In this document: piece after piece, positions 14,901-17,900 of the stretch
How positions within the stretch are numbered: the stretch's first letter is position 1
Layout of the letters: each line of letters starts with the position of its first letter
Source: Macrostomum lignano
Lineage: Eukaryota
Direction of reading: 5' to 3'
Assembly (NCBI GenBank): GCA_002269645.1
Contig: NIVC01003054.1
Span: 58,561 to 122,560, forward strand
DNA: 64,000 bases
Position numbers and translations under genes: made by a program
Notes under the pieces: generated by a model
Told to the model about the DNA's origin: nothing
What the model saw: only the letters and a program-made list of their open reading frames with translations
Databases searched by the model: none

Positions 14901-17900
14901 GTCATTTTCGAATCACCAGGCGAGGAAATTTTTCAGTTTTATCCGTGTACTTTCACCTGGTCCGGCACACTGGATTCTTTATTATTCAGGTGAGAAAGAA
15001 ATTAAATTAAAAAAACAGCGCTTTTCTACTCTAAATAGGCTAATAATTATTATTTTATTTTTTTATTTGAATTTTTTATTTGAATCGCTGGTTGTGACGA
15101 GGTCGCCGCGAAGGCGTTGCGCCAGGTGCCCGCAGCCAGCTCTTGCTGTATATAATTTATTTCTAGAATGCATCCCACAATCCATGGGTTCTACCTCAGA
15201 CAGTTTGTACACTGAACTTTGATTTCTTGGAAAATGTGTCTATAAAAATTGATTGAATTTATACACAGGTGTACCTGCCCTGCAGTCTGCTAGTGGTGCT
15301 GTCCTGGGTGAGCTTCTGGATTAACCGAGAGGCTACCGCTGATCGGGTGTCGCTCGGCATCACCGCTGTGCTCACCTTGACGACGCTGTGCCACGACAGC
15401 CGCCAAGATCTGCCTCGGGTTGGCTACGCAACCGCACTAGACTACTACATAGTAACATGCTACAGCTTCCTCATTGGCAGCATTGTGGAGTTTGCCTGCG
15501 TCCACCACTTCACCAAGTTCGGCTACGGGGAGCCGGCGCTTGAAGATGATGACGATGACGACTTTGATTATGATGATGATGGGGAGTAGTTAGTCTGTAG
15601 ACTAACTACAGAGGAATCTGCCTATTACCTATGCTCAGCAGAATACTAGCCCGCATTCTGGCTACCAGAATCCGGAATTGGGCAGAAGTGATAGGAGCGC
15701 TAGATGACAACCAGAACGGCTTCCGAAGTGGAAGATCGACGGCGGACAACGCACAGATATTCACCAGGATGCACGAGGACATTGCCGAGTACCTGGAAAC
15801 AAAAAGAGCATCAGGAGACTGCAACATCGAAGACACAGAAACGGCAATCCTCCTAGACCTCCGTAAGGCATATCCGAGAGTGTGCAAGCCGATCCTGTGG
15901 GGAATCCTCCAAGCGTACAAGATGCCGCAAGAGACGATCGAAAAACTGAAAGACCTGCATGAACATACCGCGTATAAAGTGCAAGGCAAGGAGAAATCAA
16001 GCGAAACATGGCTACCCGAGCGAGGCTTACGCGAGGGATGCCCAACTTCCCCGATATTATTTAACATCTACCACCAGGCGAGCATCAGGAAAGCGGAAGA
16101 AACTCGGGAGACAGAAGCGGCCAGCAGAGGATTAAGCTGCGGGGTGGAATGGACGTACTTACCTGGACACTCCTTGCCACCTCAGAGAATCAACCAGTAC
16201 AACTCGGAGATGCGAACGGTCAAGTGGACCTCATCGCTCTTTGCAGACGACACCACCATCCTAGGCAATGGCAGAGAACTGACGAGAAGCCTAACAACGA
16301 CCAAAGAGAATATGAAGAAGTTCGAAGAACTGACAAATGACGAGAAACAGGAGGAGATGGCCCTAGGAACATCCGTCGGAGGTAAAACTCGCATCCTAGG
16401 GTCGTGGATGGATAGGAGATACGACACACAGCAAAGAATCCAGAGAGCCGCAAAAGCGTGGAATGCGATCAGGAAAAGGTTCCATCGATGCCGCCTGAAA
16501 AAGACCACACAAGCTAAAGTGGTCGAGGCGTGCGTGGAAAGTGTACTCCTGTTCCATGCGAACACCCGCCCGTTCCTGCTCGGCGAAATCAAGAAAATGC
16601 AACAGTTCATCGACAAAACATACCGCAACATTTGGTCCAACAAGAGAATGGAACCGCTGCGCGAAATGGAAAGCCTAGGAGTAAATATGCAAGACATCCG
16701 CAACGAACTAGGTGTTGTGTCATTAAGAACAAAGATTGAGAAAAGTCACCTAAAAAGGATTGGCCACGTCCTACGGATGGAAGACGACAGACAAATAAAG
16801 CAAGCCGTATTAGGGTGGTACAGAGGCCTGGAAAGGATCCCTAAGCGCAAAAAACGGAAAAACAACACCATATCCTACTGGAAGCGCCTCATCCGGGAAG
16901 CCGGTATGGAACCGCAAGACATCGAACGCCACGTTCTAGACAGGAAACACTGGCGGAACGTAGTACACCAGCGGACTGTACACCTACAAGAGTGGGAGAG
17001 AGTGCAAGGAAAAAAGGCCAAGACGGACAGTAACAACAGCCTGATCGAACGAAGTCAAGAACGGTACCACGTAAAAACGAACCCGAGAGAGGTTGGAGAT
17101 GGCTTCAAATGCGAATACGAACTCTGCGGCAAAGTGTGTAAAAGCAAGGGCGGATTAACCATCCACCAAAAGAGGATGCATCGCGTGTTTAAAGAGCCGG
17201 TGAAATTCAGATGCCACAAATGCGACAAGGAGTTCCGACAGGAAGCGACCCTGGCAAACCATGAGAAGGTGTGCCAAGGCGAGACGGAAATAGATGCGTC
17301 AAGAGTAAAATGTCAGCAATGTGGAAGCACAATCGTAAAATCGAACCTAGCGAGGCACAGAAAGACATGTAAAGAACAACACCACAATCCACCGGAGATG
17401 GAGGAGAACAAGAGAAGAGCAAGAAAATACCGAAGGAAGACAGCAGAATGCGACAAGTGCGGAAGAACGTTATCGGCGACAAACATGGCGCGACACAAAC
17501 GCACTTGCGGTGAAGCCTGACGCTGTTCACTCCACGCCGCAAGGCGATAAACGGAGAAGAAGAAGAAGAAGATGATGGGGATGCTGGCTATCAACCATCG
17601 GCTAGTGAAGATGAAGGCGGAGCATTTGACGCGAACAACGGATGCAGCGGTGGCCAGCGACACGACTTGATGGGCCGGAGATCGTTAAATATTGAGGTGA
17701 AACGTCTCAGCTGAGATCAGTTGGGGAGGCTTGGATAAATCTCGGTTAATTAAATACTGGGAGTAAACTGTGAGAGACTGGGAGAGACTGTGATAGACTG
17801 TGAGAGACTGAGAGACTGTGACAGACTGTGAGACTGTGACAGACTGTGAGACTGGGAGAGACTGTGACAGACTTGAGTGTGATTGACAGACTGGGAGTGA

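Follow-up and report, generated by a model that had tools for sequence, protein, structure and literature searches.

The classic cases of 5'-truncated long interspersed elements (LINEs) inserted into exons are those of L1 in exon 14 of human F8, and the consequences of losing M4 from a gamma-aminobutyric acid type A (GABA-A) receptor subunit are illustrated by M4-removing human truncations such as GABRG2 Q390X and GABRA1 S326fs328X: GABA-A subunits truncated after M3 typically do not assemble or undergo retention and degradation, unless their mRNA is already lost to nonsense-mediated decay (NMD). Here we describe a locus of the flatworm Macrostomum lignano that bears comparison with both. It lies in a stretch of 64,000 nucleotides (contig NIVC01003054.1, positions 58,561 to 122,560), hereafter the window, taken from assembly GCA_002269645.1 (Mlig_3_7), and our reading, to which we assign a probability of roughly 0.9, is that a recently active LINE of the apurinic/apyrimidinic endonuclease (APE) type inserted through target-primed reverse transcription (TPRT) into exon 5 of one of three homeologs of a Cys-loop receptor gene.

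With the F8 cases the locus has in common a non-LTR (long terminal repeat) element encoding reverse transcriptase (RT), a target-site duplication (TSD) of a kind that varies in length, a premature stop in the host frame and the existence of an empty-site allele, as well as 5' truncation, a 5' junction with additional or inverted nucleotides and a 3' tail of simple repeats. It differs in that the tail is (GAA)n and not poly(A), in that the element encodes a C2H2 array where L1 has a CCHC motif, and in that the host is a neopolyploid flatworm which keeps two intact homeologs and in which a phenotype is not expected. The GABRG2 and GABRA1 truncations likewise share with the present allele a premature stop after M3 and the loss of M4; here however the stop is caused by a transposon, two intact homeologs remain, the case is known from sequence alone, and the subunit is an invertebrate alpha-like or GRD-like one with ADR instead of PAR before M2.

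The insertion is evident from its borders. An exact 11-bp repeat, GATGATGGGGA, flanks the element on both sides (Table 1) and its two occurrences are the only ones on either strand of the window, where the shuffle control gave an expected count of 0.03 and at least two occurrences in 0 of 100 shuffles. The locus fetched from contig NIVC01003054.1 is identical base for base to window positions 10631-22520, and the window makes up the final 64 kb of that contig. The gene is also present, with its site empty, at two further loci of this assembly, namely contig NIVC01001329.1 (L001, encoding protein P0121/Mlig008197g1) and contig NIVC01001451.1 (L002, encoding P0241/Mlig026527g1). The element is absent from both loci when the two paralogous contigs are compared, and each has the target just once, as GATGATAGGGA, and without a GAA run. 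When the pre-insertion sequence was rebuilt from 300 nt per side with one TSD copy retained, it aligned without gaps over 600 of 600 nt to both L001 (98.7% identity) and L002 (98.2%). Furthermore, both TSD copies of the window have a G where both empty sites read A (GGG for Gly versus AGG for Arg), and since this window-specific G is present twice, the duplication was templated from this very haplotype at integration. An exact TSD, empty sites that match it precisely and a tail placed at the 3' junction are explained together by a true insertion event only, and not by a misassembly. An earlier sequence-only reading of the window had placed a 1985-bp element between exact 11-bp duplications in an Asp-codon run of the M3-M4 loop exon, and this description holds in full, the duplication being unique in the window and matched by two empty sites, and the site falling in a run of GAT and GAC codons 22 codons past M3.

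As to how the element arrived, integration may have begun with a nick in the bottom strand at TATGAT/GATGA (slashes here and below mark a break), upon which reverse transcription would have been primed on a (GAA)n-tailed RNA. Synthesis would then have halted within the RT coding region, leaving a 5'-truncated copy, the 5' end of which would have been joined via a 13-nt stretch in which the first 11 bases of the element are repeated in inverted orientation, with two spacer nucleotides added, and staggered cleavage of the second strand would finally have produced the 11-bp TSD. An inverted-repeat search finds the two arms (15586-15596 and 15599-15609) to be 100% complementary and 2 nt apart, together making up a 24-nt near-palindrome, and the arm at the junction thus repeats, in inverted orientation, the bases with which the element body begins (15599-15609). 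Short inverted or filler stretches are typical of 5'-truncated LINE integrations, and in the present case it is the first bases of the extra stretch that create the premature TAG.

Once the element is taken away the host gene is easily followed. Deleting 15586-17581 gives ...SLNIE and an uninterrupted coding sequence (CDS) of 525 codons, all six exons have GT/AG borders, and the donor at 17696/17697 and the acceptor at 18351/18352 (cag/ACT) are both of phase 0, so that the frame restoration, the in-phase junction to the M4 exon and the lack of any other lesion in the host exons, all of which had been claimed from the sequence, are borne out. Only 3 residues distinguish the restored protein from the intact paralog in the annotation, and its Cys-loop, of the form C-x13-C, is completed by YFPMDEQIC in exon 4. 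In searches with the restored C-terminal two-thirds the protein P0121 (Macrostomum lignano BOX15_Mlig008197g1, 525 aa), which has the domains Neur_chan_LBD and Neur_chan_memb, matched at 99% identity and 100% coverage, and next came proteins of arthropods, molluscs and nemerteans that go by the names GABA receptor alpha-like, Grd or GABA-gated ion channel (40-57% identity). The best PDB matches were GABA-A alpha5, alpha6, alpha2 and alpha1 (9e-96 to 1e-93), followed by gamma2 and then by glycine receptors (about 1e-81). These Pfam domains and matches agree with the original naming of a GABA-receptor gene, and the predicted product is a GABA-A alpha-like (GRD-like) Cys-loop receptor subunit, for which gating by GABA is likewise a prediction.

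Table 1. Positions of the receptor exons and of the parts of the inserted element, numbered from the first letter of the window
Feature	Position	Strand	Basis
Exon 1: start codon, signal peptide, beginning of the ligand-binding domain	8962..9133	+	tblastn with P0121, 100% over residues 1-58; GT/AG and frame search
Exon 2	11301..11495	+	tblastn with P0121; GT/AG and frame search; identical to L001 and L002
Exon 3	12354..12537	+	tblastn with P0121; GT/AG and frame search
Exon 4: second half of Cys-loop, end of extracellular domain, start of M1	14722..14989	+	tblastn with P0121; GT/AG and frame search
Exon 5, left part: M1-M3 plus 22 codons of the loop, up to the end of the left TSD	15269..15585	+	Neur_chan_memb 3.2e-31, profile 1-83; tblastn
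Left TSD copy, GATGATGGGGA, 11 bp	15575..15585	+	exact repeat; single-copy in both empty sites as GATGATAGGGA
Non-LTR retrotransposon (LINE) copy, 5'-truncated, 1985 bp	15586..17570	+	absent from L001 and L002; RT and zinc-finger frame; second copy in L004
Extra nucleotides at 5' junction: 11-nt arm and 2-nt spacer	15586..15598	+	inverted-repeat search
Premature TAG in receptor frame, after G378-E379	15587..15589	+	direct reading; frame set by exon 5 start at 15269
Open frame: RT (from motif NYRGICLL) and four C-terminal C2H2/C2HC-like fingers	15601..17520	+	list of open reading frames; Pfam
3' untranslated region of element, 35 nt	17521..17555	+	sequence identical in L004
(GAA)5 microsatellite tail, perfect	17556..17570	+	(GAA)7 in L004 copy
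Right TSD copy, GATGATGGGGA, 11 bp	17571..17581	+	exact repeat
Exon 5, right part: remaining M3-M4 loop, donor GAG/gtgaaa	17582..17696	+	tblastn with P0121; GT/AG and frame search
Exon 6: end of loop, M4, stop codon	18352..18678	+	tblastn; Neur_chan_memb profile 161-233

The interrupted copy reads GGG GAG TAG in the host frame at 15581-15589, which is the GAG-TAG said earlier to be made by the start of the element and to stop the allele after M3. It would therefore encode at most a 379-aa subunit composed of the extracellular domain and M1-M3, with no M4. With the element retained exon 5 measures 2.4 kb, and since the stop then precedes the last exon junction by 2.1 kb of exon, the textbook arrangement for NMD, the mRNA would be a candidate for this decay; either NMD or a truncated subunit may reasonably be inferred as the outcome.

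The existence of sister copies fits well with what is known of the host genome. The DV1 line is highly inbred and has three subgenomes, S, L1 and L2, each of which is in itself negligibly heterozygous (PMC10733133), the Mlig_3_7 assembly carries three copies of most loci (PMC10733133, PMC5730564), and the divergence of the DV1 subgenomes in single-nucleotide polymorphisms (SNPs) is 2.2% genome-wide and 1.1% in CDS (PMC10733133). Among the three receptor loci the difference amounts to 0.7% in CDS and to about 1-3% in unique non-coding DNA, which matches these values, and the window together with L001 and L002 thus constitutes the expected homeolog triplet. The suggestion that the assembly be searched for an intact paralog or homeolog has accordingly been answered by two copies, each intact over 525 aa, and of the two genetic meanings first offered, a heterozygous knockout is the less fitting for an inbred line having three subgenome copies, whereas the inactivation of one duplicate stands, the copy concerned being one of three. 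With two homeologs intact the organism keeps the receptor, and the insertion is an early stage in the loss of duplicate genes that follows whole-genome duplication.

The divergence among the three copies is however a mosaic. Between the window and L001 none of 819 CDS nucleotides differ in exons 1-4 (8962-14989) as against 11 of 759 in exons 5-6 (15269-18678), and a single nucleotide of the entire CDS separates L001 from L002, although immediately downstream these two diverge by 2.7%. The window copy is the outlier within the gene, all three are equidistant downstream, and upstream the window is closer to L002. Such a pattern points to gene conversion or to recombination among the homeologs, or else to a partly collapsed assembly, and because of it an assignment of the interrupted copy to subgenome S, L1 or L2 on the basis of divergence was dropped. 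It should also be mentioned that about 3.65 kb at window positions 20338-23991, consisting mostly of a 23-bp unit repeated some 104 times and an 18-bp unit repeated some 24 times, are absent from L001 (18880-18885), a gap which illustrates that homeolog divergence is dominated by large indels and not by substitutions.

Turning to the element itself, its open reading frame (ORF) has a first ATG at 15631, from which 629 aa are encoded, and a TGA stop at 17518-17520, and it matches RVT_1 (1.3e-14, profile positions 18-192) and zf-C2H2 (2.1e-08) in Pfam. It is 45% identical to residues 440-1061 of P0016, a protein that is itself N-terminally incomplete, and its RT aligns to residues 529-687 of human L1 ORF2p (3e-4). 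In a database of 5.8 billion proteins 139 homologs were found, many of them with RVT_1, the best being only 47-56% identical, and relatives of 1022-1085 aa have Exo_endo_phos or Exo_endo_phos_2 N-terminal to the RT along with the same C-terminal finger array, which makes the family one of APE-type LINEs. An endonuclease domain was not found in the window copy, which starts within the RT (RVT_1 profile position 18), and Pfam detected no RNase H domain in either the element or its relatives. The assertion that the RT frame is unbroken is thus correct over the part present (15601-17520) but not for the full protein, as the copy starts inside the RT domain, and having neither the endonuclease nor approximately the N-terminal half of the protein it is a non-autonomous fragment that was dead on arrival. 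Self-BLAST of the window revealed no terminal repeats or LTRs of the element, and together with the RT, tail and TSD anatomy this rules out an LTR element or a DNA transposon. No further copies were detected by blastn or tblastn in the 64-kb window beyond the element itself, and an Rfam scan of the whole window returned no family at gathering score.

The order of domains, with endonuclease, RT and C-terminal C2H2 fingers and no RNase H, resembles that of elements of the Ingi/Vingi type, although this may serve as a lead only and the clade is left unassigned. Among such elements, L1Tc from Trypanosoma cruzi has at its C-terminal end the coding sequence for a C2H2 nucleic-acid chaperone, C2-L1Tc (PMC2805920), and Vingi elements have, according to a passage of PMC3708506 that cites Kojima et al. 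2011, one long ORF of about 993 aa. The full-length relatives of the window element appear to be alike in having a single ORF with the order endonuclease, RT and C2H2 and, by Pfam, no RNase H; it is nevertheless a likeness in domain order only. A literature search, the scope of which excludes the papers defining Vingi and the RT clade scheme, gave no description of an architecture of endonuclease, RT and C2H2 fingers, and the Repbase review does not mention zinc fingers in these clades.

The 3' end on the other hand invites comparison with the stringent-type LINEs of the L2/CR1 group, for instance UnaL2, which have a 3' stem-loop and a microsatellite tail. The window element is similar to these in having a short-repeat tail with a varying number of units (5 versus 7) and possibly a stem-loop directly upstream of it, predicted at 17500-17546 across the end of the ORF and the 3' untranslated region with -20.8 kcal/mol. 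It differs in that this stem-loop is barely better than shuffled sequence (z = -1.9) and without support from covariation, so it makes for weak evidence, and we know of no CR1 or L2 proteins with C-terminal C2H2 arrays.

One further copy of the element was recovered, at an unrelated locus on contig NIVC01000271.1 (L004), to which an exact-sequence cluster look-up led by returning a 204-aa ORF identical to the C-terminus of the window element ORF. Positions 7712-8670 of L004 match window positions 16617-17575 with 3 differences in 939 nt of element body (0.32%; 99.7% identity), one of the three being a nonsense change in L004, and the tail there is (GAA)7 in place of (GAA)5. As 0.32% between the element copies compares with 1-3% between the homeologs, the LINE family was active after the subgenomes diverged. 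In the interrupted host copy, which is otherwise free of lesions, 8 of the differences are synonymous and 3 non-synonymous, and this ratio, an intact frame of 1.9 kb that is not under selection and the perfect TSD and tail all fit a recent event. The view of the sequence-only reading that the insertion is young is hence well founded, given the second copy at 99.7% identity, the empty homeologs and the undecayed TSD and tail.

L004 is of some interest in its own right, since an ORF at 7423-9145 is split there by the second LINE copy, the halves matching consecutive parts of the profile for the packaging ATPase Pox_A32 (E = 0.002 and 0.007, below the Pfam cut-off). Removal of 7684-8677 restores the frame (..YEQYEDD/IEDLSKKMAEDP..), and from this restoration follow a 6-bp duplication, GATGAC, and a 31-nt filler at the 5' junction. 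Neighbouring intronless AT-rich ORFs encode 473 aa (5982-7403) and 261 aa (9164-9949), and the surroundings suggest a Polinton/Maverick-like or endogenous virus-like element.

Several points weigh against the reading of a recent TPRT insertion that inactivates one homeolog. Only this single other copy is at hand; the presence of the allele in animals, and not just in the assembly, would follow from the signatures of TPRT; the loss of function of the interrupted copy is a step that we infer; the annotation of the RT ORF as a gene hints at transcription of the insert; and 19 in-frame and stop-free GT-AG pairs could serve in cryptic splicing, including the insertion-made donor GA/GTAGTT. The last point is the basis for supposing that the insertion is functionally silent, the element being spliced out as a new intron via cryptic sites and the subunit working with a slightly altered M3-M4 loop. 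Indeed the first two inserted bases form a GT (GGGGA/GTAGTT), in-frame and stop-free pairings exist with the AGs at 17515, 17605, 17647 and 17680, and Cys-loop receptors put up with deletions and replacements in their M3-M4 loop. The donor GTAGTT deviates however from GTRAGT at positions +4 and +5, and the candidate acceptors have no pyrimidine tract like that of the gene's real acceptors, e.g. cctcctcccacag at exon 6. Furthermore, enumeration of the cryptic pairs yielded none that excises exactly the inserted 1996 bp in frame, but only imprecise and weak ones, and the AGs of the (GAA)n tail all share one phase for which there is no donor. Since the signals of the pairs are weak throughout, rescue by splicing is unlikely, though conceivable, and a silent insertion as a whole seems very improbable.

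The deposited annotation, which was built from RNA-seq with TransDecoder (PMC5730564), is likewise in poor agreement with removal of the element by splicing, because over window positions 10631-22520 it has the unspliced RT ORF, running across the element, as its sole gene, and there is no receptor model on NIVC01003054.1. Such an annotation would also be the product of a chimeric receptor-LINE transcript from which the longest ORF was chosen (629 versus 379 aa), but this is only suggestive, and multi-mapped reads from other copies of the element explain it equally well. The 204-aa LINE remnant in L004 is annotated as a protein-coding gene too, and the family seems to have escaped the repeat library by which the deposited annotation was filtered.

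Less probable still is an artefact of assembly, in which a chimeric read or contig join put a LINE fragment into the receptor exon and the allele exists in no animal. Mlig_3_7 is admittedly redundant, with 36% of its scaffold length later judged to be subgenome-chimeric (PMC10733133), and the mosaic divergence along the gene could be taken in the same sense. A misjoin would not however give rise to an exact 11-bp duplication with the haplotype-specific G in both copies, nor to flanks in perfect gapless collinearity with the empty sites, nor to a microsatellite tail placed exactly at the 3' junction, where the L004 copy ends in the same way, and window-specific SNPs, among them TAC at codon 333 and GGG at codon 378, are moreover found to the left and to the right of the element (codons 333-378 and 387-525), all of which makes an artefact extremely unlikely. 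Finally, the idea that the insertion is old and its ORF kept by selection as a domesticated RT/zinc-finger gene nested in the receptor locus can for practical purposes be set aside, since, even though the 629-aa ORF is intact and annotated as protein-coding in the deposited record and its C-terminal zinc-finger array is conserved across distant homologs, both sister homeologs are without the element at a difference of only 1-3%, the ORF begins midway through the RT fold and lacks an endonuclease, the 99.7%-identical copy at the unrelated locus has a nonsense mutation typical of neutral decay, and neither the duplication nor the tail has decayed.

A recent TPRT insertion into one homeolog being thus the favoured reading, it may be added that both known insertions of the family (window 15569-15585 and L004 7672-7683) lie at TATGAK/GATGAY in coding runs of Asp codons, albeit as two cases only. 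It is tempting to speculate that the family prefers sites approximating TATGAK/GATGAY in Asp/Glu codon runs and, being biased towards acidic coding stretches, is a disproportionate inactivator of homeologs as the M. lignano genome rediploidizes, but we consider this rather unlikely.

The kind of event is in itself ordinary, as it is the behaviour to be expected from a LINE in a repeat-rich genome and is buffered by two intact homeologs. The locus nonetheless offers a clean and fully documented case in which, soon after whole-genome duplication, a neuronal receptor gene has lost one of its copies to a transposon, with two sister loci as empty-site controls, and it demonstrates that at least one LINE family of M. 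lignano was active after the subgenomes diverged. As the species is a model both for the evolution of neopolyploid genomes and for gene knock-out work, it also matters that homeolog-specific lesions affect gene dosage, the design of guides and primers, and analyses of allele-specific expression.

The window is also crowded with minisatellites, with 58 TRF rows of score at least 200 (e.g. at 12597-14669, 17756-18158, 20917-23319 and 59903-61113). They extend into the receptor introns, where a 41-bp unit repeated some 50 times fills intron 3 and a 20-bp array lies in intron 5, and most of the long ORFs of the window are translated minisatellite arrays. The window further holds a 445-aa frame for a transposase of the mariner/Mos1 type (HTH_48, Transposase_1 and DDE_3) at 32975-34312, bordered by arrays of (GATA)n and (TAGA)n (31563-32597 and 34389-34756). 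An ORF segment at 48725-49342, presumably one exon of a gene for a transcription factor of the ETS family, matches the Ets DNA-binding domain (2.2e-17).

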